A stretch of DNA of 56,319 nt, filler included, from Platydemus manokwari (lineage: Eukaryota), in assembly GCA_037951405.1 (NCBI GenBank). It is 5 parts of 5 records of this genome, joined end to end, with 100 filler letters (N's around TTAATTAATTAA, not from the genome) between each part and the next. Parts side by side here need not be neighbours in the genome. Positions count along the whole stretch, not along the records: positions 35,174 to 47,221 come from JBBMOY010328891.1; 4 more parts are not named here. One strand, 5' to 3'. The notes under the pieces are model-generated. The model ran no database searches and was not told where the DNA came from. It saw nothing but the letters and a program-made list of their open reading frames with translations. A program made the translations under genes and the position numbers. Shown in pieces: positions 42,635 to 43,229 of this stretch. Numbering within the stretch: position 1 is the first letter of the stretch; each line of letters opens with the position of its first letter.

Positions 42635-43229
42635 ATGAAAGCTGTTGTTCTAATATTTGTATTGATGGTGATTGTTCCTGTGCTTTGCGACAACAACGAA
42701 AATGAAGAAAATGTTGAGAATGAATTGAAAAATATCGATCAATTAGGTATGATGATAAATTTTTATGTGAATTACTATATCAATGATATTTAAAATTTAT
42801 TATCATCAGGAGAGATTTAATTTCGACAAATCATGGATTTAAACAAAGTCATTGATTTTTGAATATAATATTTACAGTAATAGAGGTGCTAGTATTAATA
42901 TATTTCTATCAATAATAATAATATTTATAACTAATAATAGAATAAGAGTTGTAATAATAATAACAATTATAATTATCAAACTGTAATGATGATAATTTAT
43001 TGTCCATTTTAAATTAATATTTGAAATTTCAGATGCCAATATAGAGGAAAGCAATTCGAAAAAAGGATGCAAACGACGTTGTGTTGCCTGGATTTGGAGA
43101 CTTATGTGCGTCGCTTATGGGTTTAGATGTAGATTTGGCTTTAGATTCCGGCGATGTTTCTATGGCTGCATCGGAGTTCGTTGGATAAAAGTGTGCAGGC
43201 GTTATCAACCAATTTGTGATGGAAAATAA
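42635..43229 (+). CDS. Secreted Cys/Arg-rich peptide prepro-precursor, 102 aa; exons 42635-42746 and 43033-43229
   Basis: Exon 1 MKAVVLIFVLMVIVPVLC-DNNENEENVENELKNIDQL+g, donor gtatga, 286-bp intron, acceptor tttcag. The phase-1 join gives DANIEESNSKK-GCKRRCVAWIWRLMCVAYGFRCRFGFRFRRCFYGCIGVRWIKVCRRYQPICDGK*. AATAAA at 43279-43284. Exon 2 is GC-elevated against its AT-rich flanks. Confidence 0.88.

Follow-up and report, generated by a model that had tools for sequence, protein, structure and literature searches.

What does the short interval between positions 42635 and 43229 of this window encode? The window is a 56,319-nucleotide (nt) stretch of joined genome parts from Platydemus manokwari (assembly GCA_037951405.1). 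The part analysed here, positions 35174-47221, is a eukaryote-like piece of 12 kilobases (kb) with 27% guanine plus cytosine (GC) and a single assembly gap of 218 nt at 43301-43518. An earlier note had proposed a candidate novel antimicrobial peptide (AMP) at 42635-43229. We find that the interval most probably is a real two-exon gene for a secreted prepropeptide, whose predicted product is outside every family tested and can tentatively be read as the precursor of a host-defence peptide.

The gene lies on the plus strand and consists of exon 1 (42635-42746, 112 nt) and exon 2 (43033-43229, 197 nt), which together give a spliced coding sequence of 309 nt and a precursor of 102 amino acids (aa). 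Translation starts at the ATG at 42635, three codons 3' of an in-frame stop, and ends at the TAA at 43227-43229. The splice donor is TAG/GTATGA at 42747 and the acceptor, TTTGAAATTTCAG/A, ends at 43032. When all 11 frame-keeping GT..AG pairs were enumerated, 42747/43032 was the only one with consensus on both sides, and the whole 54-aa C-terminal peptide is kept under every alternative pair. The gene signals are thus coherent and come in the right order: TATA, ATG after an in-frame stop, signal peptide, sole consensus GT-AG pair, open frame, stop and AATAAA. The coordinates and sequence that had been given for 42635-43229 proved correct, and the junction given there, 42746/43033, is this same pair. 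The features are as follows.

42595..42601, plus strand, TATA-like box TATAAAT, 40 nt 5' of the ATG; the letters are read directly, the function is presumed
42610..42626, plus strand, pyrimidine-rich tract with a terminal AG, 8 nt 5' of the ATG; read from the sequence only
42635..42688, plus strand, predicted signal peptide of 18 aa (residues 1-18 of the translation): M-K, a 15-residue hydrophobic core and V-L-C at -3 to -1
42689..42746, plus strand, first part of the acidic propiece (exon 1), from the translation
42747..43032, plus strand, phase-1 GT..AG intron of 286 nt with 18% GC
43033..43064, plus strand, second part of the acidic propiece with the dibasic KK at its end, from the translation
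43065..43226, plus strand, putative mature peptide of 54 aa with 8 Cys (residues 49-102)
43068..43130, plus strand, Cys module A (C-3-C-8-C-6-C), from the Cys spacing
43131..43154, plus strand, linker RFGFRFRR, core of the beta-amphipathic stretch, with an R-X-R-R end
43155..43217, plus strand, Cys module B (C-3-C-8-C-6-C), from the Cys spacing
43218..43229, plus strand, tail D-G-K and the stop TAA, Gly-Lys being a possible amidation signal
43279..43284, plus strand, AATAAA polyadenylation signal, 49 nt 3' of the stop
43294-43299, plus strand, second AATAAA, abutting the assembly gap

The predicted precursor comprises a signal peptide, a propiece, a 54-aa peptide and a terminal GK. The cleavage site of the signal peptide obeys the -3/-1 rule, and cleavage past Cys18 leaves eight Cys in the protein, an even number. 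The propiece (residues 19-48, 30 aa) is rich in Asn, Glu and Asp, with 10 D/E against 3 K and a net charge of -7.2, and it ends in KK at residues 47-48. The 54-aa peptide that follows contains 11 R, 3 K, 1 D, 8 C, 6 G, 5 F, 3 W and 3 Y; it has an isoelectric point of 10.3 and a charge of +12.7 at pH 7, and 20% of its residues are Arg. Amidation at the terminal Gly-Lys would follow the processing rules of prohormones. Translation thus bears out the architecture described in the earlier note (18-aa signal, pro-region with 10 D/E, KK, 11 R and 3 K against 1 D, terminal GK). Its description of the peptide as rich in W/F/Y agrees with the count of aromatic residues, with the qualification that Phe reaches five and no more.

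The open frame alone proves nothing, because the 12-kb piece holds 15 stop-free stretches of at least 75 codons. The base composition is more telling: exon 2 is a sharp GC island of 42%, while the intron has 18% and the 3' flank 15%. By codon position the GC of exon 2 is 0.41, 0.57 and 0.35 for positions 1, 2 and 3, respectively, so that the excess sits at positions 1 and 2 and position 3 is nearer the genome background. In a six-frame scan of 23,010 segments of 54 codons, at least 7 Cys together with a net charge of at least +10 occurred in 16 segments only, all of which overlap exon 2.

The Cys residues themselves show the clearest order. The gaps between them (3, 8, 6, 8, 3, 8, 6) correspond to two copies of a C-3-C-8-C-6-C module, and an exact repeat of the 3-8-6 spacing arises in only 0.04% of peptide shuffles (P = 4e-4). 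Modules A and B share 6 of 21 residues (the four Cys plus a Trp and a Tyr), with a BLOSUM score that is not significant, and outside the Cys codons 16 of their 51 nucleotides are identical. Since the modules are unrelated outside the Cys codons, the repeat is not a recent DNA duplication, and the spacing points to long-term conservation of the predicted Cys framework. Exactly between the two modules, the linker RFGFRFRR ends in R-F-R-R, a site of the furin/proprotein-convertase type R-X-R-R. If cleaved, as we infer from the motif, it could yield a two-chain peptide or two separate peptides.

Over residues 19-29 of the peptide the beta hydrophobic moment (170 degrees) reaches its maximum of 1.12 (P = 0.03 against shuffles), whereas the helical moment is ordinary (P = 0.53). 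The Arg/aromatic beta-amphipathic pattern is limited to the central stretch, residues ~17-30. AlphaFold2 run without an alignment gave three helices, with predicted local distance difference test (pLDDT) values of 80, 66, 62, 57 and 55 over the five models. Foldseek found 0 matches to the predicted model in the PDB, VIA-align gave a top Z of 4.8 from generic helices only, and a shape search of the ESM Atlas with the same model returned only unrelated bacterial helical proteins.

Relatives of the product were sought at several levels, with the products of exon 1 and exon 2 queried separately in the protein searches. Comparison with Pfam-A by hmmscan at E-values (E) up to 10 gave 0 families for both the 64-aa exon 2 product and the 54-aa peptide. 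A word-indexed search of 5.8 billion proteins gave no match with the exon 2 or the exon 1 open frame, and a sequence search of the PDB at E up to 10 gave none either. A feature search of the ESM Atlas returned no usable match, and of 600 pattern matches in a scan of metagenome contigs, 0 were confirmed. The look-up of the exact product and a full-text literature search for three peptide strings of 9-10 residues were likewise negative. HMMER over 1.84 billion cluster representatives gave two hits only, P0001 and P0002; both are spurious, being translated tandem repeats that each align four or five times to a short query stretch, 11-13 or 25 residues long. Inside the 12-kb piece, tblastn found no paralogue of the gene; its best hit, at 45407-45457, was set aside as a chance match (E = 0.09, interrupted by stops). 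The words "candidate" and "novel" in the earlier note therefore both stand, as no search matched a described family. The same note had named a clear match to such a family among the results that would speak against its proposal; we looked for one and found none. The Cys pattern, which it did not recognise, did not match the spacing of a known family in the tests run.

Among public sequencing runs, the locus was found in one (X1), which consists of genomic DNA and probably is related to the source sample; its contigs are continuous through the intron. Depth over the gene is ~14-24, a single-copy level, and no second X1 contig is at least 90% identical over exon 2, i.e., X1 holds no close paralogue. 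A second intron allele differs by 8 bases and 1 indel in 188 nt (42735-42922), with haplotype depths of 13 and 5.1, so that X1 comes either from a highly heterozygous organism or from a pooled sample. The coding sequence in X1 shows 1 difference in 309 nt: 42647 G>A, a conservative Val5Ile change in the signal core. All depth at this position reads A, so X1 differs from the assembled haplotype. The contrast between 9 differences in 176 nt of intron and 1 in 309 nt of coding sequence (Fisher P = 7e-4) weakly suggests that the coding sequence is under constraint. Within the intron, the AAT/ATA-rich low-complexity stretch 42908-42974 reaches an X1 depth of 572; this is simple sequence of a common kind, irrelevant to the gene.

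What would such a precursor do? By analogy with known AMP precursors we tentatively propose that the locus encodes a lineage-restricted host-defence peptide precursor, i.e., that the gene is real and its product also antimicrobial. The layout generic to AMP prepropeptides, which marks a functional class and not a homology family, is present here: signal peptide, anionic propiece, basic site and cationic amphipathic peptide. The signal peptide would be cut off after Cys18, and the anionic propiece (net -7) would partly mask the cationic domain while the precursor passes along the secretory pathway. A proprotein convertase would cut after KK and, possibly, a carboxypeptidase and an amidating enzyme would turn the terminal Gly-Lys into an amide. 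The resulting product would have ~52-54 aa, a charge of ~+13, a high content of Arg, Trp, Phe and Tyr, and four disulfides. Acting as a host-defence effector, it would bind anionic microbial surfaces through its Arg residues and insert its aromatic side chains into the membrane. What the sequence and the searches show is the anatomy of the gene, its composition, the duplicated Cys framework and the lack of relatives; processing steps, disulfide pairing, fold, expression and activity are all things that we infer in this proposal. Because of the +13 charge and the clustered Trp, Phe and Tyr, binding and disruption of anionic microbial membranes would be the most economical function. The term "antimicrobial peptide" of the earlier note is thus consistent with composition and precursor layout; it is composition and analogy that speak for it, and not a homologue of known function.

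It is also possible, though on the doubtful side, that the product founds an undescribed family of host-defence peptides in one lineage, with a tandem duplication of a 4-Cys module and a beta-amphipathic Arg/Phe linker. Through the R-X-R-R of the linker, one precursor would then give either a disulfide-linked two-chain peptide or two peptides with two disulfides each. The cysteine framework would be new, and the fold probably so as well.

Several points weigh against a host-defence peptide, or against parts of the case for one. KK is less favoured as a convertase site than KR or RR, and the propiece offsets only about half of the positive charge of the peptide. The combination of signal, propiece, dibasic site and amidation signal fits prohormones, neuropeptides and toxins too. 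None of the public RNA runs searched holds the locus, the sole holder, X1, being genomic. The searches made yielded no orthologue or paralogue, and the argument from the alleles is weak, given that minor variants are lost from contigs and that heterozygosity is uneven. The all-helical model contradicts the beta periodicity; we distrust it for this reason and because its pLDDT is not reproducible. Finally, AMP genes usually occur as clustered families (PMC10945409), whereas no paralogue of at least 90% identity is present in X1 and none in the 12-kb piece.

The alternative that survives best is that the locus is not an expressed gene at all: the frame could be open by chance, its signals being fortuitous, or belong to a gene copy that is silent or died recently. 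We consider this unlikely. Chance does not account for a signal peptide combined with a sole consensus splice pair in phase, a duplicated even-Cys spacing, a bipartition of charge, a TATA box and an AATAAA, even though the product is missing from every protein collection searched and no public RNA run was found to hold the locus. The 15 stop-free stretches of at least 75 codons and the open antisense frame of exon 2 also fit a chance frame, but the coding sequence is intact, and the alleles diverge far more across the intron than across the exons.

If the gene is expressed, another extracellular role is conceivable: that of an ion-channel toxin (predatory or defensive), of a peptide with a reproductive or seminal function, or of a mucus or adhesive constituent. 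Venoms and secretions typically contain small, orphan, disulfide-rich secreted peptides with propieces, and the lack of homologues would suit fast-evolving secretory genes. We nevertheless regard such a role as quite unlikely, since nothing specific favours it, no toxin family was matched in Pfam or the PDB, and so extreme a cationic and aromatic composition is found more typically in membrane-active peptides.

We are still more doubtful of a precursor of the prohormone or neuropeptide type, from which a disulfide-rich amidated peptide would act on a receptor and not on microbes. Its arrangement of signal peptide, acidic spacer, KK and C-terminal Gly-Lys is the classic one of prohormones, yet a charge of +13, 20% Arg and clusters of Trp, Phe and Tyr are atypical of hormones, and no hormone family was found in Pfam at E up to 10. 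The spacing C-x3-C-x8-C does belong to the insulin/relaxin A-chain motif CCxxxCxxxxxxxxC (PMC4772807), but both the CC doublet and the Cx11C motif of the B chain are missing.

Opposite exon 2, the minus strand holds an open frame of 89 codons (43032-43298) that runs into the assembly gap and encodes a low-complexity product rich in Ser, Lys, Pro and Thr. That this frame is the true coding sequence and the plus-strand frame its shadow is scarcely credible despite its length, since the minus-strand frame lacks a start ahead of the gap as well as a signal peptide, splice signals and a poly(A) signal. Every organised gene signal sits on the plus strand, and probably the antisense frame is itself the shadow of the plus-strand one.

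The flanks of the proposed host-defence gene leave some choice as to where its transcript begins and ends. The pyrimidine-rich tract with the AG at 42626 could be a cis- or trans-splice acceptor, as an alternative to a TATA-driven start. An upstream open frame of 12 codons begins at the ATG at 42600 (42600-42638, plus strand) and overlaps the main ATG. Its transcription would require a start site 5' of the position predicted from the TATA box. Downstream, the assembly gap 43301-43518 starts 72 nt 3' of the stop codon, directly beyond the second AATAAA, and the transcript itself may end within the gap or past it. Farther away, at 37183-37992 (plus strand), there is a degraded retroelement Gag-like frame that is broken by several stops and terminates in a CCHC zinc knuckle (C-x2-C-x4-H-x4-C) at ~37930-37975. 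Its GC of 36-39% stands out from the 27% background, no pol follows it, and searches gave only weak Pfam zinc-knuckle hits (E = 0.1) and no homologue. A high-copy dispersed repeat at 41300-41900, ~0.7 kb 5' of the gene, has a summed X1 contig depth of 100-770, as compared with ~15-20 over the gene, and many joints and loose ends. Rfam and transfer RNA scans of the 12-kb piece found nothing.

As a candidate host-defence peptide the product is plausible by analogy. If expressed and active, it would bring a new cysteine framework, with two 4-Cys modules, a charge of +13 and a high content of Trp, Phe and Tyr, to the host-defence peptides of animals. Orphan, cationic, Cys-rich secretory peptides are a known kind, and similar candidates already number thousands in computational screens; it is the Cys framework that is new. 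The locus also illustrates how short two-exon secretory genes escape annotation based on open reading frames. Lineage-restricted peptides shape species-specific microbiomes in Hydra (PMC10945409), and in groups such as flatworms lineage-restricted host-defence peptides are essentially uncharacterised (PMC10414684).

How does the predicted peptide compare with known systems? In alpha-defensins and frog-skin peptides, an anionic propiece accompanies the cationic domain until its release by a convertase. Prepropeptides of the dermaseptin and damicornin types consist of a signal, an acidic propiece, a dibasic cleavage site and a cationic peptide with C-terminal Gly or Gly-Lys, and the layout of the precursor found here is like theirs. 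Damicornin is a 6-Cys coral AMP (PMC11767717). The likeness is one of layout, as no sequence relation was found and the contents differ: the frog peptides are linear and without Cys, and damicornin, with its six Cys, is ShK toxin-related.

Beta-hairpin AMPs such as tachyplesin, gomesin, protegrin and arenicin have 17-25 aa, one or two disulfides and symmetric ladders such as C-3-C-4-C-3-C. The present peptide shares with them the alternating Arg/aromatic beta-amphipathic residues (17-30) and the possibility of disulfides and amidation, but it is 54 aa long and has asymmetric modules with flanking gaps of 3 and 6. The resemblance to these peptides suggested in the earlier note thus applies to the central linker only (moment 1.12, P = 0.03), and does not extend to the Cys spacing, which is not a symmetric ladder.

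With the defensins, CS-alpha/beta peptides, macins and thionins, the 54-aa peptide has in common a cationic, disulfide-rich character. An anionic propiece is also found in alpha-defensin precursors, and thionins combine 8 Cys with an acidic prodomain. No Pfam profile of alpha-, beta-, big or invertebrate defensins or of gamma-thionins was matched at E up to 10. The CXXXC...CXC motif of CS-alpha/beta peptides is absent, as the 54-aa peptide contains no CXC. Plant thionins gave no Pfam match, and their N-terminal CC doublet is missing. For the macins (hydramacin, theromacin and neuromacin), there was no match in Pfam, in the PDB sequence search (E up to 10) or with Foldseek; the PDB presumably contains hydramacin-1. 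The insulin/IGF/relaxin peptides are characterised by CCxxxCxxxxxxxxC in the A chain and Cx11C in the B chain (PMC4772807). The sub-motif C-x3-C-x8-C of the A chain is present here, but a CC doublet and a gap of 11 are both missing, and the peptide is far more cationic and aromatic.

A survey of helminths found flatworms to be without big defensins, CS-alpha/beta peptides and myticalins, and its computational predictions were dominated by Cys-rich AMP-like peptides that were left untested (PMC10414684). The AMPs of Hydra are taxonomically restricted and combine a bipartite charge with complex Cys patterns (PMC11767717; PMC10945409). Among them, the HyCWR peptides are secreted, Cys/Trp-rich orphans with a cationic C-terminus and a Cys spacing unlike that of defensins (PMC10945409). 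The 54-aa peptide is likewise predicted to be secreted, Cys/Trp-rich, strongly cationic in the C-terminal part of its precursor and an orphan. It differs from HyCWR, which has six Cys and no conventional cleavage site, in having eight Cys in two modules and a KK site.

Periculin-1 combines an anionic N-terminus with a cationic C-terminus containing 8 Cys (PMC11767717), and periculins have no homologues outside their genus (PMC11767717; PMC10945409). A search for homology to them gave nothing real at E ≤ 0.001 with HMMER, nor in the word-indexed search, in libraries whose content of periculins is unconfirmed. Periculins have many clustered paralogues, whereas one copy is seen here. Compared by description only, the present precursor is nevertheless like periculin-1, as a propiece with a charge of -7.2 is followed by a C-terminal part of 54 aa at +12.7 that carries eight Cys.
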